Shown here in pieces: positions 15,756-51,877 of a stretch of 64,000 bases of DNA (the stretch's first letter is position 1; every line of letters starts with the position of its first letter). The DNA comes from Lepidodermella squamata. Its lineage: Eukaryota > Animalia > Gastrotricha. Location of the stretch: contig JBLDXI010000003.1 of assembly GCA_047495785.1 (NCBI GenBank), positions 3,782,001 through 3,846,000 of the forward strand. Reading direction: 5' to 3'. The translations under genes were made by a program, and so were the position numbers. The notes under the pieces are model-generated. The model was not told where the DNA came from. It made no database searches and saw only the letters and a list, made by a program, of their open reading frames with translations.

Positions 15756-18700
15756 CTAGTAAGCGTACATGGAAGCCTCGGCTGGGGTGTAGCCAGACGC
15801 GGTTCGACCGCCCTTGTAGGCCGAGATAGGTTGCATGTCCATCATGCGTTTCCGCTGATAGAGCCTCCGCATCTGGATCAAAAGACCGACTAGAATTATA
15901 ACAATTATCGACAGAATAATTAGCCAGATTATGAGGCCCATAATTAGCGAGTTCGATAAAAGGCCGCCGCTTGTTGAGTCTGAAGCCGTCGGGGATGATG
16001 ATTGAGCAGCCGCGGATCCACCTGCGTTTTGTCGGGGCTGTTCGCCAGCTGCTCTGGGTTTCATTGAAGAGTCTGGAAAAATGATGCACAAATTCAGTAA
16101 TTTTCGCGAAAAATTCACGCGCAGGTTATAAGCAGAAACCTGTTAGGTCTTCGTCTTCGAAAGCTTCTAGCTCGTAAATATTCTCGTGAAGAGAATACGA
16201 CCCGCCAGAATAAGCGCGAGGCACGACTGTCCGCAAAACAAAATAAACAAATCAAACTGAAAATGCCGGTGAAATTCTAAAAAATTATCGAAATTTAAAA
16301 ATCGAATTTTGAAACAGCTCGGCATTTCCAGCTTGATTTTAAGCATGAAGCGTTTGAAGCATATCGCGCTGGCAGACAGTCATAACAGCAAATACCCGAA
16401 ACAGCAAACGCGACAAAACAGCATGTTTTTCAACTTGCGACATAACAGCAAAAACATCTTTTGCATCTATTACATCGTAAGTTGTTGCTGTTTTGTCGCA
16501 GTACCTATCGGGCAAGGTTTGAGGGCTAAAGCGCTTATTACCTTTGCCTCTTGCGTAAATTACAGACCCGGCACCAACTATGGTGCCGTAACTGTAACTT
16601 GATTGGGCAAAACCAAAAGAGCCAGTAGAAAGGGGATTTTGCGGCTGGGTCAAAGGCCCATTGAATGTAGTGTAACCACAGGGATCAATGCCGTAAATGC
16701 CGACTGTTACATCAAGAATAAATGTTGCCCAATAATAAAACAATTTTAACTTGAATTCCTTGGAAAAAAACTTACTCATCGGGAATCCAGTGAGAGGGTC
16801 AGATTGTTGCCCTTGTTGTCCTAAGCAGAGGTAGCTTCCGTAAGTATTGACACAGTAAGAAGTGCTGCCGCATGGGGTCACCTTGCACTCATCGACATCT
16901 GAAAAAATCAGGATTGTTATTGACCAAATCAAGAAAAAATCCCTCATATACCCATGCAGCTTTGAGCATCTGGTCCTAACTGGAAGCCGAGGCCGCACGA
17001 GCACCTGTAACTGCCGAACGTATTCGAGCAAGTTCCCTGGCAGCCGCCGTTGTTCGAAAGGCACTCGTTAGCGTCCTGGCAGGCCGTTCCATCGGTCGTC
17101 ACTTGAAAACCCGGCAGGCATTGGCATCGGTAACCAGTTAGCGTGTTCATGCAAGTCCCGTAGCGGCACAAATTTGGATTCAGCGAGCATTGATTGTAAA
17201 CTGTAAATCAACCAAATTTATCGGGAATATAATTGAAAAAATCTCAATTCTTACCATCGTTCGGACCCCCAGTGCCGGGGTCTCCTTTATCACCCTTGTC
17301 GCCAGGGCACTGACTAGGCATGCCAGGAGGTCCCGGCGGACCCGAGTTACCCTTATCACCTTTGTCACCCTTCATACCAGCCGAGCTAGTGTCACCCGGA
17401 TCGCCTTTTTGACCTTTCGTACCTGGAAACCCAGGTGGCCCGGGTGGCCCGGGAGGTCCGAAAGGACCCGGAGGACCCATGTCACCCTTTTGACCAGGCA
17501 GGTATGTTGGTTGACCAGAGCAAGGCGAAGGAGGAACGTAGGGTGGTGGAGTATAAGGTGGCGGAGTAGCCGGAGGCGGGGGAATATAAGGAGGCGGTGT
17601 TACTGGTTGCCCATATCTGTTCGGTCGCGGAGCAGCGCAATCAGGGTTCGAGTCTAGAATGAGAAAAATACGTTAATTAGTCGATAATTCCTCCGAAATA
17701 AACAAACTAGGTGGGCCGGAGGTGCAATCATCTTCGTCGATATTTCCGTCGCAGTCGTTGTCGATTCCATCGCCTGGTACCATAGGACAGGGTTGGCAGG
17801 GTCCGTTGATGGGCGCCAACCTCATTCGGACAGGGCACGCGTAACTTTCTCGGTCTGCATAGGCATAGATTACTGCTCCGATCGGCACATTAGGAGCCGA
17901 GTGTCTAACACTGTGGTAACCATCCTACACGAAAGTTCAAAATAATTTTGAAAATTTTATTTGAAAAAGATTCGAATTTTCGATTTTGAAATTTTTGAAA
18001 ATTCACATTTTTGAAAAAATATTTAATTTGAAATTTTTGAAATTTTTTGAAATTTTTAAAATAAATGTTTGAACTTCAATTAAGAGCAAACCAATTAAAT
18101 CTTGCTTAATTTTCAGTAAAAAATGTAGCAATCCAATCAATCTTAATCAAATTAAAGTTCATTTGAATTTAAAAAAAAATTAATCCAACTCACCGATAGG
18201 GAAATTTGAGCACCAACGTACTCCGAGTTGGAAATAGGTTGCCAGTAGACGTTGCCAACTGATCTTTCATCAATCATCAAACCAGCCGTATCGCGATTCC
18301 GCATAACCACTTGTAGCGAGTGTTTATAAGTCTCTCCCGGCGTCAACCCGGCATAGTCCCAACTCGAAAATGAGAACCCATTCGAGTACTGGTTAACAGG
18401 CATGACGTAGATCATCGATGGATCAGTCGGCTCGCTTGGACTCATTTGCGATTTGACGATTTGAACGACCATAATCGGCTGAGTCGCGACTATCCAGATG
18501 TAAGCGGTTGAGGGTACTGATCTCAGCATGAAATCACCCTGTCTAGCCAGGGTGAACGAGTCCGAAAAGCCACCACTTATCGTGACTTGGGTGTTATCAG
18601 CACTAGCCACGAATTTGTAGTAATCACCCACAGTTCGCTGCGTGGTCGGGACACTGGCGAAACGAGTACCCCACCTGGTAACATCCGGTAACTGTTCAAC

Positions 18701-21547
18701 TAAATGATCTCGATTTTCACCCTCCGTTGAAGTTCGAACATTACCGCTGAAGAACGAAACAGGGCGGTTGGACACAACAAATGTCCCTGTCATATCCCCC
18801 TTACTTTGAGCCAGAAAGGTTTCAAAGGCTTGAAGGTTGATTGTCGCGGTATCACCAGGTCCGAACGATCTCCCTAATTCAGGGATCGTTACAGTGTTAG
18901 ACCCCATAGCCCGGGAAAAGGTGATGGTAACTTGGGTAGCATCATAAGCCGCGGCGATACCGAATTGACAGAAAATTGTGGGTGGTGACCAACAAACGGC
19001 GTAATGTCTCATTCCAAGGGCTTGGACCGGGAGGGCGAGGAAGGCGTCATTCGAGTAGGTTTCTTGATTCTCGCCGTAGACAGCTATGTCAGCCGATGCT
19101 CGAATAAGTAGTCCTTTCTGCGAAATTCCAGTGGCGGTCATTTTCAAATTTCGAGAGATGTTCAGCTTTTGAACACCCCATGCTGGAATTGTCAGCGTCG
19201 CGGCGATTGAAGGGTTTGTCCATTTTGGGGACAAAATATCGACCCGAACAGGCGATGGCCCGATTGCTACAACCATCACCTCTAAATCCATGTATTTCGG
19301 TTGGTCGACGAAATTTTCCTGATTTTTCGGTAAAATTATGAAATATTCGTTAAATTTAATTGGGACATACCATGAACATAATAACGAATTCCGAGCCTTC
19401 TGAATCAGGTCGTCCTATAACGGCTCGGTAGTCTTCATCGATCCTTCCATCTCCGTCATCATCAATTCCGTTTTTGATCTCTTCGTCAATCCTGCCGTCG
19501 CAATCGTCATCTCGATTATTCCCACCGAGAAAGAATTGATTTGGGACACACCCGCCTTGCCGCACATGAGCAGCAGATCTCGGGACAATTTCCCCAACAA
19601 CTGATTTGGTTTCTTCCTCAAGAAAGGCTGGCAATTGCTCGTCATCACCATTGCCCCATTTCGCTAGGTAAGCAGCTCCTCGAGTTAGGCCCTGCTCGTA
19701 AATAATCGCAGTGAATTTCTTGTCCGAAACTAGGTCATAAGTATCTGGTTTCGTCAGCTTGAGTACAGAAACTTCCCGGCCTTCTTGCCGCGACAAAACA
19801 TGGAAAGAATTGCGCTGTTCCAACGCTCGAGTTTTGTTGATGTAAATCTCTGATGATCCAACAATAAAGATGCTCACGTCGGTTAGATCGACGAAACGGC
19901 GCCGCGACGGGTTGACGACCAGTGTTTGATACGTGCTGTTTTCAAGTGGTGGTAGAATAACCATTGAAGCGTCGCCGAATAGATTGACGTGAGACGCTGC
20001 GGCGTTCATGCCTCGAGGCCCGGTAGCGGAGGATGCTGATACGGCGCTGTGGAATCGCTTTTCCGGGTCTTCGAGGTCGCTTTCTTTCAATTCAATCGCG
20101 TCGTAGGAGCTCGGGAAAAATTGGGTGACTAGAACGCCGTTTGGCTTTGACGGCCGTAAAATTCCACTTATTTGGTTACTGCCGCTCAAAGGTAATTGCA
20201 TCATCTAATTTGGCAATTTCTCAAATGAATTAATCGAAAAAAACAGAATAACTTACCATTGATTCTCCGCGTTTGCGAAGTTCAGCAATCGTTTCGCCAT
20301 CAAGGGTGACCTAAAAAATATGAAAAATTTCAACTTAGATTTGAAATGGGTCCATGAACTTTGGATTCCAGCGCTATATTTAAAGATGAATTTTCTGGCT
20401 CTTTTTATGCTTCGGTCTGCAGGGCCATTATCGATTTCAAGTATCGATTTTAAAAATCAGTGATTTTTCCGATATCAGCAGTTTTCAAAGCCCGATTTGG
20501 AAATTATTCTACACATTTGATGGTAGCTAAAATGAAAAATCTCAGCCTTATAGGGTGCATCATTATCGATCAATAAGGGCAAAATCAAAATGGCGAAAAA
20601 TCAGCTATAACCTCAATTTTAGACCCATATGAAATTTTAAATTAAAAAAATTAATAATTTAAATTGTTTCAAAATTTGTAATATAAATTTACCTCAACAT
20701 CAGACTTTGCGGCTACTAATTTAAAATAGGTCGTCGATGTGACACCAGATGCCGCCATAAGTGCCGCAATTAGGTATGATTCACCCAGGTACGATACACC
20801 CGGTAATTGCTCGAAGGTGTGATCCGCACTATGCGTCCCGCCTATGGTCACCCTACCATTTCCGACAAAAACCGCGATTTTTTGGGTCGCTGTTATCCGA
20901 ACACCACTCAAATCGAACCCGGCTTGGTATAGGAATGTCTCGAAGTGGGTCAATAATAGCGAGATACTCTCGCCTCGTTTGACAAGTTTCCCGTCGAAAG
21001 GTATAACCAAAGGCAGACCGGCAGCGCTGTCCGGGAAGTGGATGGTCACCCGAGTTTCGCCGTTATCAGCCGCAACAATCGCGAATTGGGCGAATGATTC
21101 TGGGTTGGGTTTCAGGGTGACTACAACATAGTCGCGGTCGAGCTGGTCGACAGGCCATACCAGCGCGGTGCCAGCTGAATTCTGCGCCCGAGTCGCCGCG
21201 TAAACAGCCACGTTACTCGGCTCGCTGTAGACTACGGTCGAGACTAATAACGCATAATTCGACCGGCCGACTTGCTTCAATTCAAAGGCGTGAGGTACAT
21301 TCAAGGCGCCGTAGGTCGATACATTGCCAACAAAGCCGGTGAAATCGCGTAATGGAACGCGTGGGGCTGAAATCATGACTCGAATCGGCAATTTCGAAGT
21401 TGTAGTTACAACAATTTGCGGCTCATCTGCCGTGTCGATGTAAACGTGGTTGTCCAGAAATACGACGACGTAATTTCGGGTGATCATAGTAGCCCCTAGG
21501 GTGCGTAGTAAAATTACGAATATTGACAGCCAAAGTAGGTCAGCCAT
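15756..21547 (-). CDS. Type I membrane mosaic protein, about 1470 aa: signal peptide, 2x IgGFc-binding N-terminal domain, DxDCDG Asp/Cys motifs, Pro-rich linker, collagen, 3 EGF, TM; exons 21547-20693, 20310-20257, 20204-19371, 19318-18194, 17924-17708, 17653-17255, 17200-16952, 16898-16776, 16703-16542, 16226-16140, 16072-15756
   Basis: [29 protein letters not shown] and [13 protein letters not shown] are IgGFc-binding motifs. Also [11 protein letters not shown] and [11 protein letters not shown], Gly-X-Y repeats, DANEC/DVDEC calcium-binding EGF starts, and a hydrophobic TM. Splice phases are consistent (4422 nt). Confidence 0.8.
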
Positions 21548-22444
21548 GATTCGTGTAGATGAATAAAAATTCAACGACAAGAAGACCATGTTTCACTTTC
21601 ATCTGCACCGCGTGTTTATTTTTCGCATTTTTAGGGAAATAAATAAATAAATAAGTTAAAATACCTAAAAACAACAGACCAGGTTCAACTATTTTGAACG
21701 CTTTTATTTTTAAAATTTCGCGAGGGTTTATGAACTCGCCGTATGAATTATACCGCGTTATTATTGTTTGTCATAAGTAGGTGAACTCTGAAATGTCTCG
21801 AGTTATAAATATCGCGAGGGCCGGTGACGACGAGCCCTAATCGGCACCTGTGCGCGCGCGCTCATCTTCAACTTTTATTCGAATAACAGCGCGAACACTT
21901 GCTCAAGTCATAAAAGGACCCAGTTTGGCGCCATCTGCGCGCAAATCGACGCGCACGCACCTTTCGAACGCGCGCGCGGCAAAACAAAAGAACAAACGTA
22001 CCTACTGCTCATGAGGACGATAAATAAAATTATGAGTTGCGCAATATAAATCGTTAGAGCTCCCGCAGTATCAATAAGTCATACTAAAATTGTTGATTTT
22101 TATATCATACGTAAAAATACTGACAGGTAGGTGTCAACAAAAATGGAGGCGAATATCAGTCAGAAAGCGTGAACAATTTTATTTCGAAAAAATTTGAAAA
22201 TCGCCCGGGAAATCAGTGACTCCTGTGGTATTAATTCCTATTTCTGCAGCACTAATTTTTGTTATTAAATTATGCTGCAACTCTATCACTTTACTAATTT
22301 TCGCGACCTTGCTTATAAGCGTCATAAGTTGCACAACCATTTTCTATTTTGGCAAGTATTTTTTAGGAAGTATATCTAATCCTTTGAAATTGAATCTTCC
22401 GGGATAATATTCCATCGTTTATCCGCCATTTTACAGAAGATATT

Positions 22445-28797: not shown

Positions 28798-30054
28798 ATG
28801 CTGTCAACTCTGAACGTCAGCCGTTTTATTCCTTCTGGACTTCGGTCCCGCGGCATTGGCTACCTGTCATCGGAAACGAAGCAGTTCCTGCGCCGAGAAA
28901 TCGCCAAATTCGACGCGAAATCTTCGGTAGAAAAAGCTCACACCCCACCCGGCACCTGGTACACAACACCCGAATTCTACTACCTCGACAAAGCCGCATT
29001 ACTGCGACCCAACTACTGCGCTGTTGAATCTTTGCACCAACTCAACGAAAAGAACAACTTCCAGACCGCCTCGATCGGCGACGAGTTGTACCTGCTGACT
29101 AAGCCCGACGATAAGGTGAAAGGATTCTACAACATCTGCCGGCATCATGGCGTCACCCTTGAGTGGAAACCCTGCGGCAATAAGTCGACCTTCGAATGCC
29201 CGTACCATGCCTGGACCTATACAAACGACGGCAGTCTAGTCAAACCGACAAAAATGCGCGGCGTTGAGTGCTTCCAGTCGAAAAACTTCGGCTTGAACCC
29301 GATTGAAGTCTACGAGCAGTGGCCGGTTGCTTTCGCGAAACCAGCTGGTTTCACGCATTCCGGATCTTCCGAGGCTGCGATGAAGAGTCTGTCAACCCAT
29401 CTTCAAAACATTCAACAACACGTTTTCCAGCAAAACACTGCCCATTTTATCAACGCGGGCAACTACGCCCATGTCAAGCGGGAAACTTTCGAGGCTAACT
29501 GCAACTGGAAATGCTATATCGATAACGCTCTAGACGATGTCTACCACTTCTCTTTTGTCCATAAAGCTACTCATGATCAAAACATCGACGTCCCGAAATA
29601 CAAAACCGAAGTCTTGCGAAGCGGCGATGGCGAGTTTCAAATCGATTGTATGACGGCTCGTTACAAGGGCAATGAAACTGCGATGGCGAAATTTTTGTTC
29701 GTCTACCCTAATGTTATGATTCAGATGTACAGCGAAAAGCCGTGGTTTGACATTTACTACGTCATCCCAACCGGGGTTGGAACAATGCGCCTTATTGTTG
29801 ACTGGTTCGCGAAGAAGGACTATGTTAACGCTACGCCGAAAGATCGGCTGTCTGTTGAAGTTGAGGATATGGCCAAGTTTGAAATTCAGGCGCAAATGGA
29901 GGACTTGGAGGTTTGTGAACGCCAGCACAAGGGGCTGAGCACGAAGGGTTTCACATTCGGGCGTTATTCGCCGTCGATGGAGGTTGCGATGTACGCTTGC
30001 CATCAGCGATGGGCGAACGAGTACCTGAAATATTTGGACGCTAATGTTGAATGA
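28798..30054 (+). CDS. Rieske non-heme iron oxygenase, choline monooxygenase-like; intronless
   Basis: Rieske motif NICRHHG...FECPYHAWTY; mononuclear Fe motif NWKCYIDNALDDVYHFSFVH; C-terminal EDLEVCERQHKGL...GRYSP; Arg/Ser-rich N-terminus resembling a transit peptide. Confidence 0.85.
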   Translation: MLSTLNVSRFIPSGLRSRGIGYLSSETKQFLRREIAKFDAKSSVEKAHTPPGTWYTTPEFYYLDKAALLRPNYCAVESLHQLNEKNNFQTASIGDELYLLTKPDDKVKGFYNICRHHGVTLEWKPCGNKSTFECPYHAWTYTNDGSLVKPTKMRGVECFQSKNFGLNPIEVYEQWPVAFAKPAGFTHSGSSEAAMKSLSTHLQNIQQHVFQQNTAHFINAGNYAHVKRETFEANCNWKCYIDNALDDVYHFSFVHKATHDQNIDVPKYKTEVLRSGDGEFQIDCMTARYKGNETAMAKFLFVYPNVMIQMYSEKPWFDIYYVIPTGVGTMRLIVDWFAKKDYVNATPKDRLSVEVEDMAKFEIQAQMEDLEVCERQHKGLSTKGFTFGRYSPSMEVAMYACHQRWANEYLKYLDANVE

Positions 30055-37216: not shown

Positions 37217-37391
37217 AAAAGAGAACAAAGCACAATATAGAGCTAATGCTCGAGACAAAACACAAAAATGCCGTCCAGACATTTATTCTACGTCACATGA
37301 TTTAAGGGGGTGTTGAATTGTTGCGAAACCATGTGACTTCGCTTGCGAAACCGACTTCACGCAATAGAATCACAGCTGTGCCTCGCATCTG

Positions 37392-40300
37392 CTAGGCAGA
37401 ATCAAGGTAAACCTTGATGATGAAAGAGTGAACTATAAGGCCAGCGAGAAGACACAAGCTCAAAATGATGAGATCGAAAATTCTGATGAGACCGCCGTTT
37501 CTGACAACAACAGCAGGCAAGCCGGGATTACCTAGCCGATCATCTATCTCACGCCATAATCTTTCGTAACAGCAAGACACAAGCTGATAAACAGTGCAGC
37601 AACTAGCCAACCAGAACATCGAAAATACGTAGTCGACCAGGAGAATTCGCTGGGAGGTTTTAGCGACGTTGCTAGAGACTGTCGATTGCGCGACGCCCAT
37701 CGCCAGCAGAACAGCCATTGAAAATGCGGGGCGGTCAGGGTCAGTTGTCGGGATGGCGAATGAGGCAATTTCGACGATATACAACACAGCGCTTGGAACT
37801 ATTAGGTTGTAAACGAAATACGACGGGTTGCGAACCATTGAGACTACGTAAAATACAGCGCTAGATGTCGTCCCTTTGTAGCTGATAGTCGATATGTTGT
37901 AACCATGCCCGACGAAACTCCATCTGTCCTGATCGTCGTTGTCCTGCAGAGCGAAAATTGGATCGCTAAACGTCATGAATTTCACCCCGTAATTGAGAGA
38001 AAAGACTAATGCACATGTTTGCTTGTCAAACGGGTAGTTATGCAGTTCCATGCTGCAGGAAGCTGTGAACTTTCCCTCTTTCAGCCAAAAAAATTCGACC
38101 GTTCGATTTGGTGATTGATCCGACTTTGAAGTGACAGCGATTAGGTCTTCGCCGAACTCGTCAGAGTATTGCATGTAGACACTGCCATCGCCACCATTTA
38201 CAAATCGGAACGAAGGCGTCCATATTTCCGAAGATTTAGCTACGTACAACTGCTCGTGGGGTCGTTCTGTAAAAATGTCCTCGCTATCGACCGAACAGGT
38301 ATCGACTGTCCACTTAAGTAGGACATTACCAGACACAGAAAACGTTTCCTGGACCACATCAACGTCGAGTAGTTTTTGCAAGCCAAACGCCGGTCGAATG
38401 ACGAGAGGAGACGAGTCTGAAGTCGGGGGAACAGCTCGTACTGGGAGGAAGTCTTTGCACTGATCAGCCAATTCCTTAGCTGTTATGTTGGCGAACGGCA
38501 GCCCTGTTTCGAAGAGCACAGTCAATAGTTGGTCGAAAATTCGTTTCGCTGAACCGCCATAGTTATCAACAGTCTTGGCGAAAGCTGGCACATCTTGAAA
38601 CAATCATTCAATTAACATAAATAATAAATAATGACGAGACGATGAACTCTCACCAAGTTTATCAGTGCTGAAAAGCATGACATCTTTCTGTACAACCGTT
38701 GCAGGTTCGACGGTCGAAGTAGAGGCAGTGGAGGCAGTTGAATACTGCAAATGATAATAATCAGGATTAATGAAATATGGCTGACAAATATGATTTATTG
38801 TAGAATTGGTGATTTACTTCCTCTAGTGCAAGAGTTGAGCTTGTATGAGCAAGTTGAGTTAATGTCAGTGTGGAGGTGATTGTCTTTGGCGATGGCGTTA
38901 TGCTTGCTGACGATGATGGACTGGAAGTCGAGCCTCGGGTTGATGTTATTGCAGTAGAAGTAGTGCCTGCTGAAACCGTAGAAGTTGGAAGCGAAGTAGA
39001 GGCCGTAGTTGTTGTTGTGGCGTTTGATGGCATGGCGCAGTCATAGAAACTCACTGAGCGTACTTCGGTGGTTAGTGGGTTTGATGTATTTTCAGTTTTT
39101 CGGTTGGTTGCAGTAATTCCGAGGGAGTAATTGCCGGCTCCAATGAGGCTCTTCAGTGAAGCGCTCATATTTATATTTCTCATAAAGTTTACACAATATG
39201 TGTTGTCGAAATTGCAAGCGTTTATCGACAGCGATTGGTTCGTAATTCGCACTTGCCAAGTCGATCTGCCCATAATAAATGAACTGATAACAAGCTGAGT
39301 CATGTAACGCGGCGAACACCAATCTAGCGGGTTGGCACCGGTGCATCCTTCGTACCAGTATTTGCCCGCACCTGGAGAAGTGTAGATAGCCCCCATTATA
39401 CCATGGTGTAGGTAAGGTTGGAAAAATAGGATTAGACCTGAAAGATGCCAGAGTAATTTTTGAAAAAGAATGAGTGTAGATCTGGCTATACCTGTGCGCT
39501 TATCCATGGCGGTGCCGAAGTCGTATTTTATGACAGAGTTATTATAGATGGGATGAGTTCCGTTGGGCGGCCGTACTATTCCATCCTGATTAGATACGGC
39601 GAGCTGGAAGCCATATGGCCAAATAGATGATGCATTTCCAACGTAATTTGTACAATTTCCTTGCAGTTCCATGCTGAATTCGACGTAAATGTCTGTACCT
39701 GCCGTCAGTGGCTATAACTAGAATGATTTAACGCAGGTGCAATACTTGAATACTTACCGTTTGCGCCCACATCGCACTATTTTGACCTTGTACAGAAGAA
39801 AGAAGCCGAACGTTGCCCGGAGTCACTCCAGTGCTGTTCAAATTGGACGGAGGATAGTAGTCCCATCGCGACAGATCTGCTGGCGAGGTGTATGACCACT
39901 CTTGGCGAAATGTTCCAGTCGGACAAGACAGCTCCGTGGGACTGACAGGCGAAGGCACTGGCACTGTTCCACAATCCCATGTATCCACCTTAAATATGTC
40001 CAAGTTGACGTAGCTCCCTATAGGATGTGCGGCGATCACCCCGAGCGACATTTGCGCCGATGCAAACGAGGTCTGAAGCGACTCACCCAAGTCAATGTTC
40101 GACAAGGTTGTCATACAGTTTGTCGAGTTAAATATACAGAAGTCAACCGTGAAATAGCGCTGTTGAACGCGCAGTTTCAAGGTCGCTTTTGTTTTCAGGT
40201 ACGTATCAATAAACGATTGAGACGTGCTGGAGCAAAAACTGGCTTGTGTGCTTGTGGGCTTGCAGTTATCAATCCACTTTGTGGCGTTTGGCTCCTGTGT

Positions 40301-40893
40301 AATAATATTGGCCCTGATATATTTGGCGCTGCTCACAGTGTCCACGGCCGCCGTGAAACCTAATTCGGAAATGCTAGTAAAATATTCATATCAAAACATT
40401 GTCTGCACAAACCGATATGATCATCCCTCGAGACGCCGTATTCCTTTCTGACGTCAGAGTTACTCAATTCGCCGCTAGGAGTTCGAACAATACCATTCTG
40501 ATTTGACAAAATTATCGCGAAGCCAGAAGGACTGTTTGAGCCTTGAGTCAAATTTGTCATCGAAAAGGTCAACTCGATGTAGAAGTCGTCCAGCTTGAAA
40601 GGCTTTGGAAAGGGTATGAAAAAATCATTTGATAAGTACCTAAAATCTGAATTTCATACCGCTCTTGCCCACATGGCGCCGTTTTGATTTTCTACCTCAG
40701 ACACGAGCCTTACGGCATCAGCTGGTTTAGATGTAGTCACCAAACCAATGGGCGGATAATACTCCCAAGCAGTTGGTAAGTCTGAAGGCCCTTGGAATGA
40801 TAACTCTGGTTGGTATTGGCCGGTATTCGAGCATGCCAAAACCACGTTTTGGTCGATCATGACCAGTGCAAAGAGGAAAATTATTGTCTGCAT
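37392..40893 (-). CDS. Tandem L-type-lectin / mucin stalk / Cys-loop ligand-gated ion channel fusion, copy A (1052 aa); exons 40893-40660, 40602-40413, 40359-39758, 39711-39492, 39437-38818, 38744-38654, 38593-37392
   Basis: Signal peptide; two domains with VRLxS..xQNxAxW..P, F.(I/V)E..F, GF...(L/V)SN and AVDT-type motifs; Ser/Thr stalk; IWTPSFRFVN, Cys loop CSMELHNYPFDKQTC, and four TMs. All six junctions are GT-AG and phase-consistent (3159 nt). Confidence 0.8.
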
Positions 40894-41387
40894 TTTTTTA
40901 GAGGTTCAGATTCCGCAAAAAGTCATTTGCGAATATTTTTTTCAAATAGGTAGCGGAGCCTGCACGTCAATCCGATGTTATCAATAATTCATGGTCAGCC
41001 TGAAACCTGAAACTTAAGGGATGTAAACTCTGCAGTTTTGCAAAATAGAAGATGCAACGAATAGCTTTTTACAAGTGAGAAGTTCATTTAATGGTCTAAT
41101 GGCGGAAACCTTTATCCATGAATAATTCATGAATATAAAACGAGATGCGCAGTTCGAAGGCAAGAACATGCGGATCAACAGGCTTAAATAGGCTTATTAG
41201 CTAGGGTCGAATCTGGTGCAAATCCAGGGAATGAATCTTTTAGGCCGAAATTATAGGCCATAATATCATCAGAATTGAGGCAGTGGCTAAGCCAGTGATG
41301 TTCAGCATGTTTTTATTGCATTAAGAAAACTTCAGGCTTGAATAAAAGTATGTGAATACATCGTTTTTCCCGCAATCTCGCATCTCC

Positions 41388-42380
41388 TTAAACACGGGAA
41401 CAAACTTCGTTAACGTAGTCAGTGCTTCGGCTGTTCAAGTTTTGAATAAGCCATTTGCCGTTGCTCCACGTTATGTAATTGCAGATGCCTCCTGACGGGC
41501 AGCTCGCTCCGTTGTAACGTTTCATCGTTATCGCGTCCAAAATCGTCCGACTCGTACCCTCGGCAAACACACATTTGCCATTCGGAGTTGTATACTTGGG
41601 AATTGGAGTGCTGCCTGCCTTGGCCTTTTCACCAGCCAAATATGTAGCCGCTGCAGTGCGAATTTCCCGCAGACGGCGAACGCCCTCGGCTAGTCCATCT
41701 TTCCAGTTCCACATCTGGTTACAAGTCGGCCGCGGATTTGTCAGCTGCAGCATACCGTAGCCATTGTCGCAAGTGACGAAAGGACAGCCGGTGGAAGGGC
41801 TGATGTGGCGGATGGATGGACTCTCTTGTCTGAGGACGTATTCCGCATACCACATATCCCCAGCAATTCGATTTACCTCGGCAAAAACTGCTGACTGAGT
41901 CGGGTTGGTTGCGCGAATGCTGATTGTTGCAACCAGTGCGTTCTTCACAGAGCCGGCGGAATAGCTAAGCGTTGCCTGGCCTCCTCTGAAAATACTTTGA
42001 CCCCGCAGTGCTTGCGTGATGTCCCACAATGAGCCAGTCCCAGTTAGGATCACATCCGGGCAACCTTCAATCTCATTCGTTGCCGTGCAAGAATTCCCAG
42101 ACCAGGCGCCGCATGGAGATTGAGAGCAAACGCGGGTTTTGCAGGATCCAGTACCACTGCCGGCCGTTATTTTGAATTGCCATGAAACGGCGAGATTCAA
42201 AGTGCTGCAATTGGCGAGAAGATCTGGCAACTGAGGATCCGCGGTGATGTAAACTGTGGCGCCATTGGCTATAACTGCTCCGCCTCTACCTGCTTGTAGT
42301 CGACATTCATTAGCTGCTAATGCCAAGTTTTGGCTGTAAAGCATCACCAGCACCAGAGAATACAACATGGTTGAGCCCAT
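41388..42380 (-). CDS. Secreted, intronless lysozyme-like (lytic transglycosylase/SLT-fold) protein of bacterial type
   Basis: Signal peptide; VLRQES (putative catalytic Glu-Ser), GYGMLQLT (GLMQ-like motif), QMWNWKDGLAEG, KRYNG and YVNEV in the order typical of SLT/GH23-like domains. Confidence 0.65.
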   Translation of the reverse strand: MGSTMLYSLVLVMLYSQNLALAANECRLQAGRGGAVIANGATVYITADPQLPDLLANCSTLNLAVSWQFKITAGSGTGSCKTRVCSQSPCGAWSGNSCTATNEIEGCPDVILTGTGSLWDITQALRGQSIFRGGQATLSYSAGSVKNALVATISIRATNPTQSAVFAEVNRIAGDMWYAEYVLRQESPSIRHISPSTGCPFVTCDNGYGMLQLTNPRPTCNQMWNWKDGLAEGVRRLREIRTAAATYLAGEKAKAGSTPIPKYTTPNGKCVFAEGTSRTILDAITMKRYNGASCPSGGICNYITWSNGKWLIQNLNSRSTDYVNEVCSRV

Positions 42381-42619
42381 TAGTCGAAGTTTGAAAAGTT
42401 TGACGTGTGTGCAATTGAAGCGAGAGAAAACGGAGTATTTATTCTGCGTGCGATCAGATAAAACGCTGGCTTCCTATCCACACAAACTTCTAGATTAGTT
42501 CAACTTGTCTGACAATGCATTTAACGTTTCACTGACACGTTTGTGTCATAGGATCGGCAAGGTGGTTAGAAAAACGAGCACATCAGCGATTAATTTTCGA
42601 GCGGCTGCTTTTCTAGTTT

Positions 42620-42678
42620 GAGTAATATAAGTAATAATAAGTAATAAGTAATAAGTAATAATAAGTTTGAGTAATAAG
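42620..42678. repeat. (GTAATAA)n-type microsatellite
   Basis: Directly visible tandem AGTAATA/GTAATAA units. Confidence 0.7.
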
Positions 42679-43627
42679 ATAACTCGAGCGCAATTCCTTC
42701 TACCAGCAGCCCTCAGCCACCATTTTTGTGAAAAGTTATAATTGTTTTCTTTTATTCGTCATCGGGCAGAATTACGATTATTTTCCAGCAAAAATTGTTT
42801 TTTTTTGTTCTATATAACATTTTTAGAAGTTCTGAAGAGTAATCGCAGGCTCACTAATTTTTCAAAATGTGGTTCCGCTGCATCAAATTAGGTTCCGCTC
42901 ACCGTAAATTTGGTTCAGGCAAAAGGAGGATCCTTTGTATTCTTATCCTAATGTCATTTTTTTCTCTATGCCTAATGTATCTCTCATATAGGTAGATAAA
43001 GAAATTAAAATAAACTGGCACTTTGATCATACTTTATAATCTTCTTTTTCAATTGAATAGAAAATGTCTGAGACAAGATTCACAAATTCACACATCAAGT
43101 CGCAAATTCACCGAGAAAAAGAAGCTTTATGCCTTCCACCTTTCACGGCACGAAAAAATTCAGCGTATAACTGATGCTGCGACTGACTGACTGAAGACTG
43201 AGGCAACAAGGCTTTCCTCAAGTAAAGGGCCTGTATATTTTTCTAGCACTCGTGAAACACCAAACGGATTCCGAAAACACCAACAGATTAGTGTCCGAAA
43301 CTAGGCCAAGGATGAGTCGGATCAGAAATTTGATGTCAAAACTAGATTCTGCTGGGTCGAAAACTCTTCATCGGAGCGGTCTTCGGTTGCGCTGAATTCA
43401 TCGGGCAGAAGGCTGAATTTTCTGACTGGAGATCGAACTTCTTGGCGATAATGTTGATGTAGCGAATGATTGCCGCCGGATCGTCATCAGAAGGCATTGG
43501 CTCGTTGGCTAACCTGGCTATCGCAGCGATGTCCTAGCCCCGTTGCGCCTTGGTCCAAGGAGGACGATTTTCGCCCTGGTCGGCTCTGCAGGCTCGTTCG
43601 GTCACGTCGCGCGATTTTCGAAGGTGC

Positions 43628-44532: not shown

Positions 44533-44804
44533 ATAATATCGCCTCTAAATTCTAAATATCCGAGTACTTCCCTCATTTTCTAGGTTCAATTAGGATATAC
44601 AGGTATAATAAGGGCGAAAGAAGCACAATTTAGAGCCACATATCCATTATCATTATTCTACGGAGCTAGAGATACAACTCGAAACTGACATCTACACGTT
44701 TAAGGCTACTTCTCACGGTTTAAGGGGGTGAAATTGCAAAGCTGAGAGTTCACTTAGACTGCGAATACGGCTTCCTCGTATTCGAATTGCAGTTTTGCCT
44801 TCAT

Positions 44805-47800
44805 CTACCACTCTGATTCATGATAAACGTCAATGATGATTGCGTGAACTGCAATGCCAGCGAGAAGACACAAGCCCAAAATGATGAGATCGAAAATTCT
44901 GACGAGACCACCGTTTCTGACGAAAAAATTGGGCATGCCCGGATAACCTAAATTGTCATCCATCTGACGCCAGAGTCTTTCGTAACAGCAAGCCACAAGC
45001 TGGTAAACAGTGCAGCAACTAGCCAACCCGAACATCGAAAATACGTAGTCGACTAGGAGAATTCGCTGGGAGGTTTTGGCGACGTTGCTAGAGACTGTCG
45101 ATTGCGCGACGCCCATCGCCAGCAGAACAGCCATTGAAAACGCGGGGCGGTCAGGGTCAGTTGCCGGGATAGCAAATGAGGCCATTTCAACGATAAATAG
45201 TACAGCGTTAGGTACTATCAGGTTGTAAACGAAATACGACGGGTTACGAACCATTGAGACTACGTAAAATACAGCGCTAGATTTCGTTCCTTTGTAGCTG
45301 ATTGTCGATATGTTGTAGCCATCCCCCACGAAATTCCACCTGTCCTGGTCTTCGTTGCCCTGCAGAGCGAATATAGGATCAATAAACGCCATGAATTCCT
45401 TCCCGTAATTGAGAGAAAAAGCTAATGAACATGTTTGCTTGTCAAATGGGTAGTTGTGAAGTTCCATTCTACAGGCTGCAGTAAACCTCCCCTCCTTCAG
45501 CCAGAAAAATTGCAGCGTACGATTTGGTGATTGAACAAACTTTGAAGTGACAGCGATCAGGTCTTCGCCGAACTCATCAGAGTATTGCATGTAGACACTG
45601 CCCTCGGCGCTATTAACAAATCGGAACGGAGGCGTCCATATTTCGGATGATTTAGCAACGTACAACTGCTCGTACGGCCGTTCCGTGAAAATATCCACAC
45701 TGTCAGCAGGGCAGGTATCGACTGTCCACGTAAGTAGGACAGTCCCAGACACAGAAAACGTTTCTTGAACAACATCAACATCGAGTAGTTTTTGCAAGCC
45801 AAAAGCTGGTCGAATTGCGAGAGGTGATGCGTCTGAAGTCGGCGGAACAGCTCGTACTGGGAGGAAGTCTTTGCATTCATCAGCCAACTGTTTTGCTGTC
45901 ATGTTTGCGAACGGCAGCCCTTTCTCGACGAGCATAGTCATTAGCTGGTCGAAAATTTGTCTCGCTGAACCGCCAATGTCATCAACCGACTTGGCGAAAG
46001 CTGTCACATCTTTTAACAATAACTCAGTGAACATAAATGACAAAGAGACGCTGAATAAATTCACCAAGTTTTTTCGAGCTGGACAGCATGGCATTGTTTT
46101 TTTGAACTGTTGCAGGTTCTTCGACGGTTAAAGTAGAGACAATAGAGGTAGTTGATACCTGCAAAATGGTAAAATAATCAGGATCCAGGATAAATAAGAT
46201 ATATGGGGAATGAGGGATTTATAAGTATACTTCTTGTGCAAGGGTTGAGCGCCTAATGCCTGGCCTAGTCGTAGATGTTAATAGCGAAGTTGAACCATCA
46301 GCAGTTGTTGTTGTGGCGTTTGATGGCATGGCGCAATCGTAAAAACGTACAGAGCGTACTTCCGTGCTAATTGGGTTTTCAATATCAGTGGGACGGTTGC
46401 TGGCGGTAATTCCGAGGTAGTAATTCCCAGCTCCAGTGAAGGTCTTGAGCGAAGCGCTCATGCTCACGTTTCGAAGAAAGTCGACACAGTAGGTCATATC
46501 AAAATTGCAAGCATTGATCGACAGAGATTGATTCGTAATACGCACTTGCCAAGTCGACCTACCCATGATGTATGAGCTGAGAACAAGTTGGCTCATAGCA
46601 CGCGGCGAGCACCAGTCTTGCGAAGGGGTACCTGTGCAACCGCTTTTCGACCATTTGCTAGCATCTGGCGAAGTGTAGATTGCTCCCATTATACCATTGT
46701 GTTGGTAAGGTTTGAAATACTGGGTTAGACCTGAAATGTAGGAGAATAAATTTAAAAAAAAGAATGATCCGGCTATACCAGTATGCTGACTCCTTGCAAC
46801 GCCGAAGTCGTAATTTAATGAAGAATTATAATAGCTAGGATGAGTTCCTCCGGATGGCCGTACGATTCCGTTCTCATTAGATACGACAAACTGGAAACCA
46901 AGTGGCCAATAGGATAGGACCGTTCCAACGTAATTAGTACAATTTCCTTGCAGATCCATGCTGAATTCGACGAAAATATCTGTACCTGCCGTCAATGCCT
47001 ATCAGAAGTCCGTCAATGCTTTATCAGAGGTGCAAAACTTGAAAATTTACGGTTTTTGCCCACATAGCACCATTTTGACCAGTCGCGGACGAAAGTAGCC
47101 GAACATTGCCCGGAGTCACTCCAGTGCTGTTCAAATTGGACGGAGGATAGTAGTCCCATCGCGACAGATCTGCTGGCGAGGTGTATGACCACTCTTGGCG
47201 AAATGTTCCAGTCGGACAAGACAGCTCCGTAGGACTGACAGGCGAAGGCACTGGCACTGTTCCACAATCCCATGTATCCACCTTAAATATGTCCAAGTTG
47301 ACGTAGCTCCCTATAGGATGTGCGGCGATCACCCCGAGCGACATTTGCGCCGATGCAAACGAGGTCTGAAGCGACTCACCCAAGTCAATGTTCGACAAGG
47401 TTGTCATACAGTTTGTCGAGTTAAATATACAGAAGTCAACCGTGAAATAGCGCTGTTGAACGCGCAGTTTCAAGGTCGCTTTTGTTTTCAGGTACGTGTC
47501 AATAAACAATTGCGACGTGTTGGAGCAAAAACTGGCTTGTGTCGGGGGCTTGCACTAGAAAAAATAACCGTGTAATTAACGCGCGCTTCTTGTGGTATTT
47601 AACTGTTTCAGCGTTATTTAACGTTATTTAGTTGGCGTGTTGCGTATGAGCACTTGAGGTAGTTATATAAATGGGTGGCGGTAGTTCAACTTTTCGTTAG
47701 CTAACGCACGGAGCCCGGTTAACTAACGCGCGGCAAAAGAGCGTTATATACACGCACCCGCACATCCAGGTGTGTCGCAGTAATGTTGTTAGTTAACGTG

Positions 47801-49142
47801 GTATTTAACGCGCGCGGCCGAGCGGGCGTGAAAATTTCTAACCAGAGCTTACAGCCCAACATTTTTATTTTGTTTCTTTATCATTAGCGGGTTTCAACAA
47901 AGAAACCGCCATTCAGGAGTTACTTGGAACATCGAGTCAAAATTTAACAAAAACTTAAGGAAAGACTATGGGAAGAGGAAGACAGTGTTATAGAGTTAAA
48001 AAAGGATAGAGGGAGAGGTTTGCGCGCGAGTTAGAGGTGAGGACTAAACTTAGATTGCCAATGATATTGTTATTCATAATATTATTTCAGCGTTAAGCGC
48101 CTCAAAAATACACGCTACATTCGATCTGCAATATGATTTGCATATGCACAAATGCAAGCGCGTGCTGTAATGAGACAAGCGCGTTAGCTAACACACAAGC
48201 AGCGCTAAATAACGCCCACCGCTCGATTTCGGGTGACAGTGCGTTATTTAACGAGTGTCGCGACTCCCGGAATCAAGTTTTTCCAATCCGACGTTAGCTA
48301 ACGCACTGCGCGCCCCTGTAACTAACACGATTTCTTTGTGTTACAAGTGATGAGCGTTAATAACACGCAAATCAACGCGGTAGTAACTGGAGGCGTGCAT
48401 AAATAACGCATCGCTCTTGATGCGTATTTACCGGGTTCGTTACTTAACGCAAAATCCGTTATTCAGCGCGAGTGTTAAATACCACCGTTATTTACACGGT
48501 TAATTTTTCTAGTGTGCAGTTATCAGCCCACTTTGTGCCGTTCGGCTCCCGTATAATATTTGCCCTGACGGATTTGGCGATGCTGGGAGTGTCAACGGCC
48601 GCCGTAAAACCTAATTCACGAATGAACGTAAGGAACTCAACTCAAAACATAGTCTACGCAAACCGATATGATCATCCCTCGAGACGCCATATTGCTTCCT
48701 GACGTCAGAGTTACTCAATTCACCGCTAGGAGTTCGAACAATACCATTCTGATTGGACACAATTATCGCAAAGCCAGAAGGACTGTTTGAACTTTGAGAT
48801 AAATTTGCCATCGAAAAGGTCAATTCAATGTAGAAGTCGTCCAGCTTGAAAGGCTTCAGAAATGTTAATAGACTACTTTAGAAATTATGTGATAACATCT
48901 GAATTTCATACCGCTCTTGCCCATATGGCGCCGTTTTGGTTTTCCACCTGAGACACAAGCCTTACGGCATCAGCTGGTTTAGATGTAGTCACCAAACCAA
49001 TGGGCGGATAATACTCCCAAAGCGTTGATAAGTCGGAAGGCTCTTGGAATGATAATGTTGGTTGGTATTGGCCGGTATTCGAGCATGTCAAAACCATATG
49101 TTGGCCGATTATGAACAAAAAGAGCAAAATTATTGCCTGCAT
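44805..49142 (-). pseudogene. Lectin-lectin-mucin-Cys-loop channel fusion, copy B; exons 49142-48912, 48853-48664, 48610-47051 (interrupted at 47553-48514), 46998-46779, 46730-46231, 46158-46065, 46009-44805
   Basis: Same seven-exon structure and phases as copy A. Removing the CACTA element plus one TG restores a 3036-nt frame-consistent CDS. Confidence 0.75.
47553..48514. mobile_element. Non-autonomous CACTA (CMC/EnSpm) DNA transposon, 962 bp
   Basis: TIRs CACTAGAAAAAATAACCGTGTAA / TTACACGGTTAATTTTTCTAGTG; TG duplicated at 47551-52 and 48515-16; empty site seen in copy A (GGGCT-TG-CAGTT at about 40256-40267); many palindromic subterminal repeats (GCGTTATTTAACG, CGTTAGCTAACG). Confidence 0.9.
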
Positions 49143-49390
49143 CTTGTGTACGATTGCCCCGTTAGGAATTCAGATTCTGCAAAATGTTATTAACGAAAAA
49201 TTCTCGCGAATAGCCAGCGGAGCCTGCATGTTAATCCGATGCCATCAAAAATTCATATTTACCCTGAAACCTGAAATGTCAAGGTGCATCTTTGCAATAT
49301 AGATGACGCAACAGACAGCTGTTTACAAATTAAAAGTTGAGTTCATGGTCTAATGACAGTAACCTTTATTCATGAATTACTCATGAATAA

Positions 49391-50423
49391 ATTAAGTATA
49401 ACGCCTTAGATCTGGTTTTAGACAGCAGGCGGATTTTAGGGCGCTAGGCCGAAGGCCGTTGCGCTCTAAAATCCGCCAGCTGGATGAAACTGGATCTCAG
49501 GCGTTGTACTTTTTAATACGTGTCTGAAATAAAATCCGCTGAGCAGGACAGATCAATTTCCGAGATTGTATTTTTGGACGTGTCCAAGAAATGGCTCTCA
49601 CAAAATGACACCGGCTTATTTAATGATTAGTCACCGTCGATTGTTTCCATGTTTTAAATCACATGTCCGAGTGGTCCGATTAAGACAAGGTTAAGCAGGC
49701 GGCATGTTGGTCTAGTGATAATGAAAAGCCCGCGCTTGGCTTAACTAGTCATCTCATTTGGCGTTTATTAATTTTGAATGCTACCAGCTATTTTTCTCAC
49801 ATTTTGGCATTCAAATTTCGTTAATAATCGAGCGTCGTCACGTCATTCAAAGTGACCAAGATGTGCTACTAAAGTAAGTTTGACTCTTTTTCAAGCGTTC
49901 CCAGAAGAATCGATAGGCCTTATTTTGCTAAAATCAATCATTTCTTACTTAGGCAATAAGATTGGCCTGATTTCAACAATTTTGAGAAATTTATCAGCGT
50001 TATTTTGCGCCGGTAAATTTCGATTTATTGATTACTATCGATTTGTTTAAATTCTGCGGTACTCACAGTATAGCTGTATCGAGGGCTATGGGCTGATTTT
50101 CTTATACCCTATTGATTTGATTCTTAGTTTGCCCAAATTCCTTTTCGCGCGAAAATACTTGTCCAAACCCCACTTTTCATTTGTCACTAATCGAACCAGC
50201 TGCTTCTTGTCATAACATCTGGTAAAAAAGGTTTTTCTCGAGATGTTTTGGGCTCTAAGACAGCGTGTCCGACACAATGATGGATTAATTTCAGGCAGGC
50301 CGATTTTTGAAGTCAGGAAGGCAGGACATCAAAAAATCGGCCTGCCTGAAATTAATCCATCATTGAGCAGGACGCACTGTCTGAAATTGGAGCGAAGGCG
50401 GATTTTATTTCAGACATGTATTA
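49391..50423. mobile_element. About 1-kb non-autonomous insertion with nested inverted repeats (Crypton- or Helentron-like)
   Basis: Absent from the homologous upstream region of copy A (about 41130). 5' hairpin 49394-49511 around GGCCGAAGGCC; 49514-49539 is inverted at 50398-50423; internal hairpin 50275-50365. Confidence 0.65.
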
Positions 50424-50498
50424 AAAAACGAGATGCGCGCAGTTCAAACTAAGTTCATTCGGAATCAATTAGGCATACTTAGTGACGCCAAGATTGAA

Positions 50499-51263
50499 AT
50501 ATACTTTAATTGGCATCTAAATCATTTTTTTCTGCATCTAATATCTTTTTTCCACATCTAAATCTTTTTTTCGCATCTAGGCCTTTTTTCTACAGCTAAT
50601 TCTACTTTTTCTCACATCTAATTTAAAAATAGCTGGAATGACTTCAAAAAAATTGAAAAATGATTCAGCGCGTTTTTCTCGATAGGAAAACATATGTTTC
50701 GTTGCCAGATCAGGCGCGCGGAAAAATGCACGTGGGAAAATGTTAATAGAAGAATGCACGTGCGAAAGGCGTAGTAAATAAATTGTGCAATAGTCATGTT
50801 TAGCGCATGAAGAAACATGTCAAGGAATGGTGGGCCGGAAAACAGCACCCCAAACTTTATCGCCGGATAAAGAAGGACATCGATGATCTACAACTGTCGC
50901 GCTGTAGAAAAGAGTTCATCATCGCGTCGAAGCTCCTCTACACTGGGAATCATTATATGGCTTTGGAAAAGCCTTAAATTGATGTTTTTCTTTCATTTTT
51001 CCGTTTTTCTTTTCTTTTCTTTTCGCTAAATAAAGCGATTTACCTATGTTCTGGCAACAAAACATATGTTTTCTTACCGAGAAAAACGCGCTGAATCATT
51101 TTTCAATTTTTTTGAAGTCATTCCAGCTATTTTTAAATTAGATGTGAGAAAAAGTAGAATTAGCTGTAGAAAAAAGGCCTAGATGCGAAAAAAAGATTTA
51201 GATGTGGAAAAAAGATATTAGATGCAGAAAAAAATGAATTAGATGAATATTAAAGTATGGTCC
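50499..51263. mobile_element. Foldback/Mutator-like MITE with about 210-bp TIRs
   Basis: 50501-50709 is the reverse complement of 51050-51258, and the TIRs contain repeated CATCTA units. CCAAGATTGAA occurs on both sides (50488-98, 51264-74) as a probable TSD. Confidence 0.8.
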
Positions 51264-51445
51264 CCAAGATTGAACCTTGGTGCACAAATCACATAAAAAA
51301 TAAACCAAATTAAGGAATGAATCTTTTAGGCTGAATTTGAGCTCATGCTATCACCACAATTGAGGTGGCACTAAGCCAGTGATTTCAGCTTGTTTTTATT
51401 ACGTCATTGAGAAAACTTCAAGCTTGAATAAATGAATATGTAGTG

Positions 51446-51877
51446 CCATTTGCCGTTGCTACACGTAATTTAATTGCAGAAACCCCTGACGGGCAGCTCG
51501 CTCTGTTGTAACGTTTCATCGTTATGGTGTCCAAAATCGACCGACCCTCGAAGTCGAAGTGCTGATGTGGCGGATAAGCGACTGCCGACCGAGACAGGTT
51601 GGTTGAGCGATTGCTGATTGTCGCAACCAGCGCGTTCTTGACAGAGCCTGTGGAATGTTGAATAGCTTACCGTTGCTTTGCCTCTTCTGAAAATACTTTG
51701 ACGCGGCATTGCGTGCGTGATGTCCCACAATGAGCCAGTTGCGGTTAGGATCACATCCGGGCAACCTTCAATCTCATTGGTTGCCGTGCAAGTATTTGCA
51801 GACCAGGCGCCGCAAACGCAAACGCAAACGCAATGAGAACAAACGCGGGTTTTACATGCTCCTGTACCACTGCCGGC
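51446..51877 (-). pseudogene. Degraded paralog of the lysozyme-like gene at 41388-42380
   Basis: ILTATGSLWDIT...QSIFRRGKATVSYS and other blocks are collinear with 41451-42165, with deletions and frameshifts; the 3' flank is also homologous. Confidence 0.8.

Follow-up and report, generated by a model that had tools for sequence, protein, structure and literature searches.

How did an intronless gene for a lysozyme-like protein come to stand among the animal genes of a gastrotrich, and what might its product do? The gene lies in a stretch of 64,000 nucleotides of Lepidodermella squamata (assembly GCA_047495785.1, contig JBLDXI010000003.1, positions 3,782,001 to 3,846,000), hereafter called the window, whose own numbering is used for all coordinates. 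An initial annotation of its letters had described an open reading frame (ORF) of 330 amino acids with a signal peptide and motifs of the SLT type, and had proposed a muramidase acquired from bacteria by horizontal transfer. Our analysis reveals that the gene encodes an expressed, domesticated and secreted glycoside hydrolase family 23 (GH23)-like protein from an unnamed family of bacterial origin, with catalysis predicted from the residues it retains.

Transcription and genomic residence of the gene

The coding sequence occupies positions 41388–42380 on the minus strand as a single exon of 330 codons, from an ATG start to a TAA stop; the initial annotation had the coordinates exactly and left the strand unstated. 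Expression and genomic DNA were checked with contigs from three public runs (X1, X2 and X3), placed on positions 40600–43400. The X1 contigs were restricted to 41359–42412, with a depth of 300–550 against about 0–5 in the flanks, and spanned the coding sequence without any internal joint. One of them passes 42412 and continues as CCCCATGTACTCTGCGTTGATACCA, which we take to be the 3' part of the SMART/Smart-seq template-switch oligo in reverse complement. Because the contig end reads as this oligo, we regard X1 as cDNA, and a capped mRNA as starting at position 42412. The gene is intact and strongly transcribed.

A transcript starting at about 42412 has a 32-nt leader as its 5' untranslated region (UTR; 42381–42412, minus strand). 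A TATA-like box, AATAAATA, lies 24–31 nt upstream of the mapped start (42436–42443, minus strand), and its sequence and position suggest that it functions in the promoter. An AATAAA polyadenylation signal (41312–41317, minus strand) follows about 70 nt past the stop codon, near the 3' contig ends at 41359 and 41308 in X1 and X3. Contigs of X2 resemble genomic DNA and join the gene to its flanks on both sides. Among the variants listed, which are not all of those present, the coding sequence carries two synonymous changes and one Ser-to-Thr replacement and the 1.8 kb of flanks about 37 changes, so that the low variation of the coding sequence is only suggestive.

The gene also has a history within this genome. 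Collinear blastn blocks define two units, at 37248–42164 and 44665–51877, which form a tandem segmental duplication with 81–92% identity and a divergence of about 18%. The first unit holds a Cys-loop channel gene and the intact lysozyme-like gene, the second another channel gene and a decayed copy. Because each unit contains both genes in the same order, the lysozyme-like gene already adjoined the channel gene before the duplication. Its co-duplication with the channel gene, in units that are now 81–92% identical, indicates that it has long been resident in the genome. The decayed paralog, noticed in the initial annotation at a distance of 10 kb, was located at 51314–51877 on the minus strand by tblastn and blastn. 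It consists of pieces 75–90% identical to the intact gene, interrupted by frameshifts and stops, and lacks the region for residues ~166–277, including the putative catalytic Glu. The 3' UTR lies within the duplicated stretch and is common to both copies.

The surrounding genes are of animal type, as had been proposed, with Cys-loop channel ligand-binding domains in large ORFs at 37392–38603 and 44805–46094, an ANF receptor domain and IgGFc-binding domains. That these neighbours contain introns was a further part of the proposal, and here the result is softer: they appear as same-strand ORF pieces separated by gaps of 55–308 nt, which are consistent with short introns. The G+C content at third codon positions (GC3) of the gene (0.53) falls within the range of neighbouring ORFs (0.40–0.62), and the ORF coverage of the window is 0.50, compared with 0.93–0.99 in bacterial loci of the family. 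The correlation of its relative synonymous codon usage with that of the neighbours (0.2) is uninformative, as the genes are short and the neighbours are included in the pooled reference.

Architecture, fold and active site of the protein

The protein begins with MGSTMLYSLVLVMLYSQNLALA, which looks like a signal peptide whose cleavage site is of the A-x-A kind, in line with the initial annotation. Cleavage is predicted after A-L-A, at the end of residues 1–22 (42315–42380, minus strand, read from the translation), and all 14 Cys residues lie in the mature part. AlphaFold was of no use when run on the single sequence, giving a predicted local distance difference test (pLDDT) score of 36; AlphaFold2 with the family alignment gave a model with a pLDDT of 91.4 and a predicted template modelling (pTM) score of 0.89. 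In this model, an Ig-like beta-sandwich (model residues 1–135; residues ~24–158 of the full-length protein, 41907–42311, minus strand), with a low-confidence Cys-rich loop at ~80–98, precedes a helical domain (model residues 135–307; residues ~159–330, 41391–41906, minus strand) with the GH23-like fold of goose lysozyme and lytic transglycosylases. The product would be a secreted, disulfide-rich two-domain protein in which the beta-sandwich packs against the catalytic domain.

Fold evidence was drawn from the whole-protein model. Aligning its C-terminal domain with VIA-align returned, among the matches listed, GH23 enzymes throughout except for one GH124 cellulase, and MltE complexed with chitopentaose was one of these matches. 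A PDB search with the family profile, built from a 76-row alignment (A1), placed three g-type lysozymes at the top (1gbs, 153l and 3gxk; E 0.004–0.02); the alignment runs through the GxGxxQ...W block and, for the cod enzyme, also through the ES motif. Comparing A1 with the catalytic domain of Escherichia coli Slt70 (NC_000913.3) in hhalign paired RQES with ARQES (Glu478) and GMLQ with GLMQ (P 3.8e-4). A shape search of the ESM Atlas with the whole model yielded three clusters of bacterial hypothetical proteins (template modelling score 0.66–0.71), followed by an annotated SLT lytic transglycosylase cluster, and a feature-based search agreed.

Because fold match, profile search, hhalign and shape search concur, the C-terminal domain is best modelled as a divergent GH23-type domain that lies outside Pfam SLT. 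The query did not match PF01464 (SLT) even at E 10, and two of the 76 relatives reached the level of E 0.02 (E 0.024). Scans of Pfam, NCBIfam and PHROGs and a phmmer search of the PDB, run with the single sequence or its halves, gave nothing meaningful. Foldseek against the PDB returned only weak beta-sandwich matches, such as the FimH lectin domain, all with E > 0.001, and no lectin function is deduced from them. The idea that the protein departs from the canonical animal g-, c- and i-type lysozymes is supported, its N-terminal ~135 residues forming a separate beta-sandwich.

All the motifs named in the initial annotation were located, namely QES (residues 185–187), GYGMLQLT (207–214), WNW (224–226), RYNG (288–291) and YV (within DYV, 321–323); residue numbers refer to the full-length query. 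The consensus of A1 reads IAxHES ... YxQFN ... DxGxGIxQLT ... LWNWKxNV ... AIKxYNGA ... NYV, and G134, E186, P200, G207, G209, W226, W310 and Y322 are invariant. Glu186 (codon at 41823–41825, minus strand), present in 76 of 76 rows and aligned with Glu478 of Slt70 and with the RES motif of the cod g-type enzyme, is the putative catalytic acid. Together with Ser187 it makes up motif I of the lysozyme/transglycosylase series. Motif II is found in GYGMLQ (207–212; Q212 in 69 of 76 rows), which aligns with GLMQ of Slt70 and the g-type lysozymes, and motif III in RYNGA (288–292; N290 in 75 of 76 rows), which lies outside both of those alignments. Family alignment, profile, hhalign and model together bear out the proposed ES / GxxQ / YNG series in a lysozyme/lytic-transglycosylase fold.

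The candidate second catalytic carboxylate is less fixed. An acid stands at one of the columns 205 and 214 in 66 of 76 rows and at both in a single row; 44 rows combine D205 with T214 and 19 rows P205 with D214, column 214 being the one in which goose lysozyme has its Asp97 (MQVD). The query belongs to the first of these two groups, with Asp205 and Thr214. This pattern suggests that the second carboxylate may be relocatable between two positions within the family. Judged by its residues, the protein is most likely a peptidoglycan-cleaving enzyme for digestion or defence, and a muramidase activity in defence or bacterivory would fit the initial annotation; the sequence does not distinguish hydrolysis, as by a lysozyme, from formation of 1,6-anhydro-N-acetylmuramic acid, as by a lytic transglycosylase.

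A bacterial family and its eukaryotic branch

An exhaustive HMMER search found 400 representatives (clustered at 50%) with E ≤ 0.001, 85 of them with E ≤ 1e-10, the best at E 1.7e-37 and 38% identity. A word-indexed homolog search had given no matches, which we attribute to its low sensitivity. In many relatives, the match covers query residues ~22–330, and for this reason the N- and C-terminal domains are taken as one conserved module of about 300 amino acids, which either stands by itself or forms the C-terminal end of longer proteins, reaching 1,974 amino acids. This is an unnamed family without a Pfam model, and its module is widespread in bacteria. Scanning GTDB representative genomes with a 16-row sub-alignment identified members in Victivallaceae and Lentisphaerales (Lentisphaerota), Zixibacteria, Verrucomicrobiota, Bacteroidota and Bryobacterales (Acidobacteriota), including the isolate Haloferula chungangensis (Verrucomicrobiota) and Marinoscillum furvescens DSM 4134 (Bacteroidota). 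The named bacterial members sit on dense bacterial contigs with an ORF coverage of 93–99%.

In bacteria, the enzyme gene comes with a companion. All 11 bacterial loci first examined, and six further ones, have a partner gene, which in the first 11 lies directly downstream on the same strand, often overlapping, and encodes 315–424 amino acids. Its ORF lies at 8447–9673 in locus L004, 8245–9288 in L005, 5918–7192 in L006 and 1136–2083 in L007, and directly after the family gene in L011–L027. The partners are homologous across phyla (26–27% identity over ~390 amino acids between L004 and both L024 and L026), have signal-peptide-like N-termini in four of four cases inspected and match no Pfam family. 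No partner gene was found in the window or in any eukaryote-like locus examined. Enzyme and partner form a conserved two-gene cassette in bacteria, in which the second protein might act as an inhibitor or confer immunity.

The longer relatives give a view of the settings in which the module works. Four of five that were scanned carry the surface repeats Flg_new_2, TSP3_bac or LTD and one carries Lectin_C; long bacterial members have InlB-type B-repeats, bacterial TSP3 repeats or a lamin-tail domain. An origin as a domesticated interbacterial toxin, comparable to Dae, was not supported, as none of these five proteins has a toxin-delivery domain of the Rhs, PAAR or LXG type. The partner, with its 315–424 residues, also contrasts with the small adjacent immunity gene expected for a toxin origin.

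Three further observations concern the bacterial loci. A gene with TPR repeats stands upstream of the family gene on two unrelated contigs (L004, 4739–6286; L006, 203–1639), with no BLASTP similarity detected between the two. P0084 (L008, 280–1815) is encoded on a dense contig and falls in the clade adjacent to the eukaryotic one; in it, the module is fused with a C-type lectin domain. The cluster of P0015, a Victivallaceae-like member, includes a 31-residue fragment (P0172) whose label gives a Caudoviricetes metagenome-assembled genome as its source, a hint that some bacterial copies may be borne by phages or prophages.

The named members among the best matches are animal proteins: XP_055349665.1 of the tardigrade Paramacrobiotus metropolitanus, OWA50811.1 of the tardigrade Hypsibius exemplaris, and A0AC35FTB4 of the nematode Panagrolaimus sp. 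PS1159, the last labelled 'Transglycosylase SLT domain-containing protein'. Five relatives (P0001, P0152 from the cluster of P0002, P0007, P0008 and P0013) lie on eukaryote-like contigs, which are marked by sparse gene calls, intron-split fragments of glutathione S-transferase (GST) or aldehyde dehydrogenase, a DDE_1 transposase fragment and an ORF coverage of 17–58%.

In a tree of 94 rows, computed with IQ-TREE under the mixture model LG+C20+F+G4 with posterior mean site frequencies (PMSF), the query and every eukaryote-labelled row fall into a clade of 22 rows that contains no named bacterium (ultrafast bootstrap, UFBoot, 99; Shimodaira–Hasegawa-like approximate likelihood ratio test, SH-aLRT, 96). 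Its closest neighbours are two unassigned rows, followed outward by a clade made up mostly of Verrucomicrobiota, and the whole lies within a tree of Verrucomicrobiota, Lentisphaerota, Bacteroidota, Zixibacteria and Acidobacteriota members. The clade has marks of its own: Cys220 occurs in the query and 14 of 21 other clade rows, against 0 of 54 outside; Cys270 in the query and all 21, against 7 of 54; and the segment between E186 and P200 is a short loop, of 14 residues in the query, against a median of 29 outside, and thus ~15 residues shorter.

A bacterial origin of the family is well supported by this nesting, and the matches show that the N-terminal domain is part of the bacterial module and not an animal addition. 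The gene of the window appears to add one more member to a eukaryotic branch that also holds proteins of tardigrades and a nematode. Because its nearest relatives are those of two tardigrades, a nematode and eukaryote-like contigs, the transfer seems to be an old one that several lineages have in common, or else the gene was handed on from one eukaryote to another. The proposal of horizontal transfer is therefore upheld as regards a bacterial-origin family that is integrated and expressed, and not as regards an acquisition private to this genome.

The explanation we consider probable, taken as a whole, is that of a compact animal transcription unit for a secreted two-domain GH23-type enzyme from this shared branch of bacterial origin. 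One branch of the family would have entered eukaryotes without the partner gene, the window protein belonging to that branch. After secretion, Glu186 would act as the general acid cleaving the bond between N-acetylmuramic acid (MurNAc) and N-acetylglucosamine (GlcNAc) in bacterial peptidoglycan, Asp205 being a candidate for the second carboxylate. The beta-sandwich may lengthen or anchor the groove that binds the glycan, and the role of the enzyme would lie in the digestion of ingested bacteria or in antibacterial defence. Several observations weigh against this explanation. The tree is unrooted, most rows of the clade are unnamed metagenomic proteins, and one sub-branch, the P0014 cluster, stands on a dense contig (L032) with PP2C and protein-kinase genes; this sub-branch may belong to bacteria or to a compact protist. 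Others would suit a private, recent acquisition from bacteria, the grouping with tardigrade and nematode proteins then being due to a long-branch artefact or to similar donors having given rise to parallel transfers: the terminal branch of the query is long (0.9), the gene is intronless, and the query retains an ancestral Arg156 that is found in 81% of non-clade rows and in no clade row. In an approximately unbiased (AU) test on a reduced set of 46 rows (LG+G4), a tree with the query constrained to the Verrucomicrobiota clade was worse by 22.7 log-likelihood units, yet this placement was not rejected (AU p 0.113). We nevertheless find such an acquisition rather improbable in view of that likelihood cost, the clade support under the mixture model, the cysteines and short loop common to query and clade and rare or absent elsewhere, the eukaryotic rows being the best matches in both identity and E-value, and the ~18% divergence of the duplicated units, which speaks for long residence. 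The reverse history, in which the family was ancestrally eukaryotic and bacteria acquired it, is very unlikely: some canonical g-type lysozymes are argued to have passed from eukaryotes to myxobacteria (PMC12855814), but here bacterial members from at least five phyla occupy deep branches and keep a two-gene cassette whose partner the eukaryotes lack, and the eukaryotic rows form a single nested clade. To bacterial contamination or an assembly chimera we assign a practically negligible probability. Only the bacterial-type family membership and the absence of introns would speak for it; the gene lies on one contig with animal genes on both sides, is bridged to its flanks by independent DNA contigs, matches its neighbours in GC3 within a window of low ORF coverage, and has a TATA-like box, a 5' end marked by the template-switch oligo and an AATAAA signal. 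Because it was co-duplicated with an animal channel gene and one copy has since decayed, we agree with the initial annotation that it is no contaminant.

A different doubt concerns activity. The protein could be a catalytically altered or inactive derivative, whether a secreted recognition protein or lectin that binds peptidoglycan or other glycans, or a cutter of another GlcNAc polymer such as chitin. The query departs from the family at three of 21 near-invariant columns (Q192H, F193I and N229G) and is the second most deviant of the 76 rows, the median deviation being 0, and this divergence close to the active site leaves room for an altered function. The long branch points the same way, and the decay of the sister copy indicates that the locus tolerates loss. 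GH23 and g-type lysozymes include enzymes active on chitin oligomers, and the MltE match was in complex with chitopentaose. Against this stand the retention of Glu186-Ser187, the GxG-x-x-Q block, YNG, Tyr322 and Asp205, and an intact ORF with few, mostly silent variants that is abundant in cDNA, so that we regard an altered or inactive protein as unlikely. For the preferred explanation, an active enzyme from a shared branch, a more specific form can be offered tentatively, as a possibility we lean slightly against: a single transfer from bacteria, the nearest sampled being Verrucomicrobiota, into microscopic bacterivores would have founded an undescribed two-domain class of GH23-like animal lysozymes with a shifting second carboxylate, whose members survive patchily, in this genome and among tardigrades and nematodes, as muramidases for digestion or immunity.

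Genomic neighbourhood and relation to known systems

The neighbourhood of the gene is rich in secreted or surface proteins: two adjoining large ORFs with IgGFc-binding (FCGBP/mucin-like) domains lie at 18152–21589 on the minus strand, and the Cys-loop channels bear lectin domains. One unbroken ORF of 418 amino acids (28798–30054, plus strand) combines a Rieske [2Fe-2S] domain with a ring-hydroxylating oxygenase alpha-subunit domain, and its GC3 (0.62) is the highest among the ORFs checked; it may be another bacterial-type gene in the animal genome. Upstream of the promoter of the lysozyme-like gene, a TTATTAC-type microsatellite (42627–42700) shows a 24-nt length difference in X2. At 42856–42949, about 480 nt upstream of the gene, the summed X2 depth reaches about 8,000, against about 60 nearby, with many divergent loose ends, and this segment is probably a dispersed repeat.

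The lysozymes of animals are conventionally grouped into c-, i- and g-types, with a few phage-type or GH25-type acquisitions. The gene described here suggests that there is one more, uncharacterised GH23-like family, which animals acquired from bacteria and have gone on using; for the copy in the window, transcripts provide direct evidence, and its residence in the genome is clearly recorded. It adds a data point to the debate over the bacterial origin of metazoan GH23 lysozymes, and its compact, easily expressed product lends itself to experiments on the conversion of a bacterial wall-remodelling enzyme into an antibacterial or digestive enzyme of an animal.

The closest known counterparts are XP_055349665.1, OWA50811.1 and A0AC35FTB4, which have the same two-domain module at 33–39% identity, belong to the same clade and share Cys220 and Cys270. 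These proteins are 469–650 amino acids long, whereas that of the window consists of the signal peptide and the module only. A literature search by accession found no paper mentioning any of the three. The two of them whose N-termini were read (P0005 and P0024) start with a membrane-anchor-like segment, followed by an extra region of about 300 amino acids, neither of which is present in the window protein.

Among characterised enzymes, the GH23 family-1 lytic transglycosylases Slt70, MltC and MltE of E. coli and MltF and MltD of Pseudomonas aeruginosa have an identity of about 12–13% to the query. The window family differs from them in having its own motifs (QF, LWNWKxN and NYV) and the invariant Trp310, and the window protein in having a fixed Ig-like beta-sandwich as partner domain, in falling below Pfam SLT and in being secreted by an animal, as opposed to a periplasmic housekeeping enzyme. 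Animal g-type lysozymes are single domains of about 185 amino acids with Asp97, as opposed to two domains of about 300 amino acids with Thr214. They match marginally, through the family profile only, and a single-sequence PDB search does not find them. For the canonical metazoan GH23 g-type lysozymes, exchange with bacteria has been argued (PMC12855814, PMC11576321), one of these papers making no mention of tardigrades and rotifers (PMC11576321). The window protein appears to stand apart from that canonical clade, in a separate family of 400 relatives among bacterial hypothetical proteins.

The tick and mite Dae amidases and the GH25 muramidases are further peptidoglycan hydrolases that eukaryotes acquired horizontally. 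With these and with other acquired hydrolases, including the phage-type lysozymes of bivalves and LdcA and AmiD of aphids (PMC5303276, PMC8689515), the gene shares the concept of an acquired wall-degrading gene that was fixed, expressed and secreted by an animal. It differs from the Dae, GH25, phage-type and LdcA/AmiD cases in its fold and family and in its host lineages.
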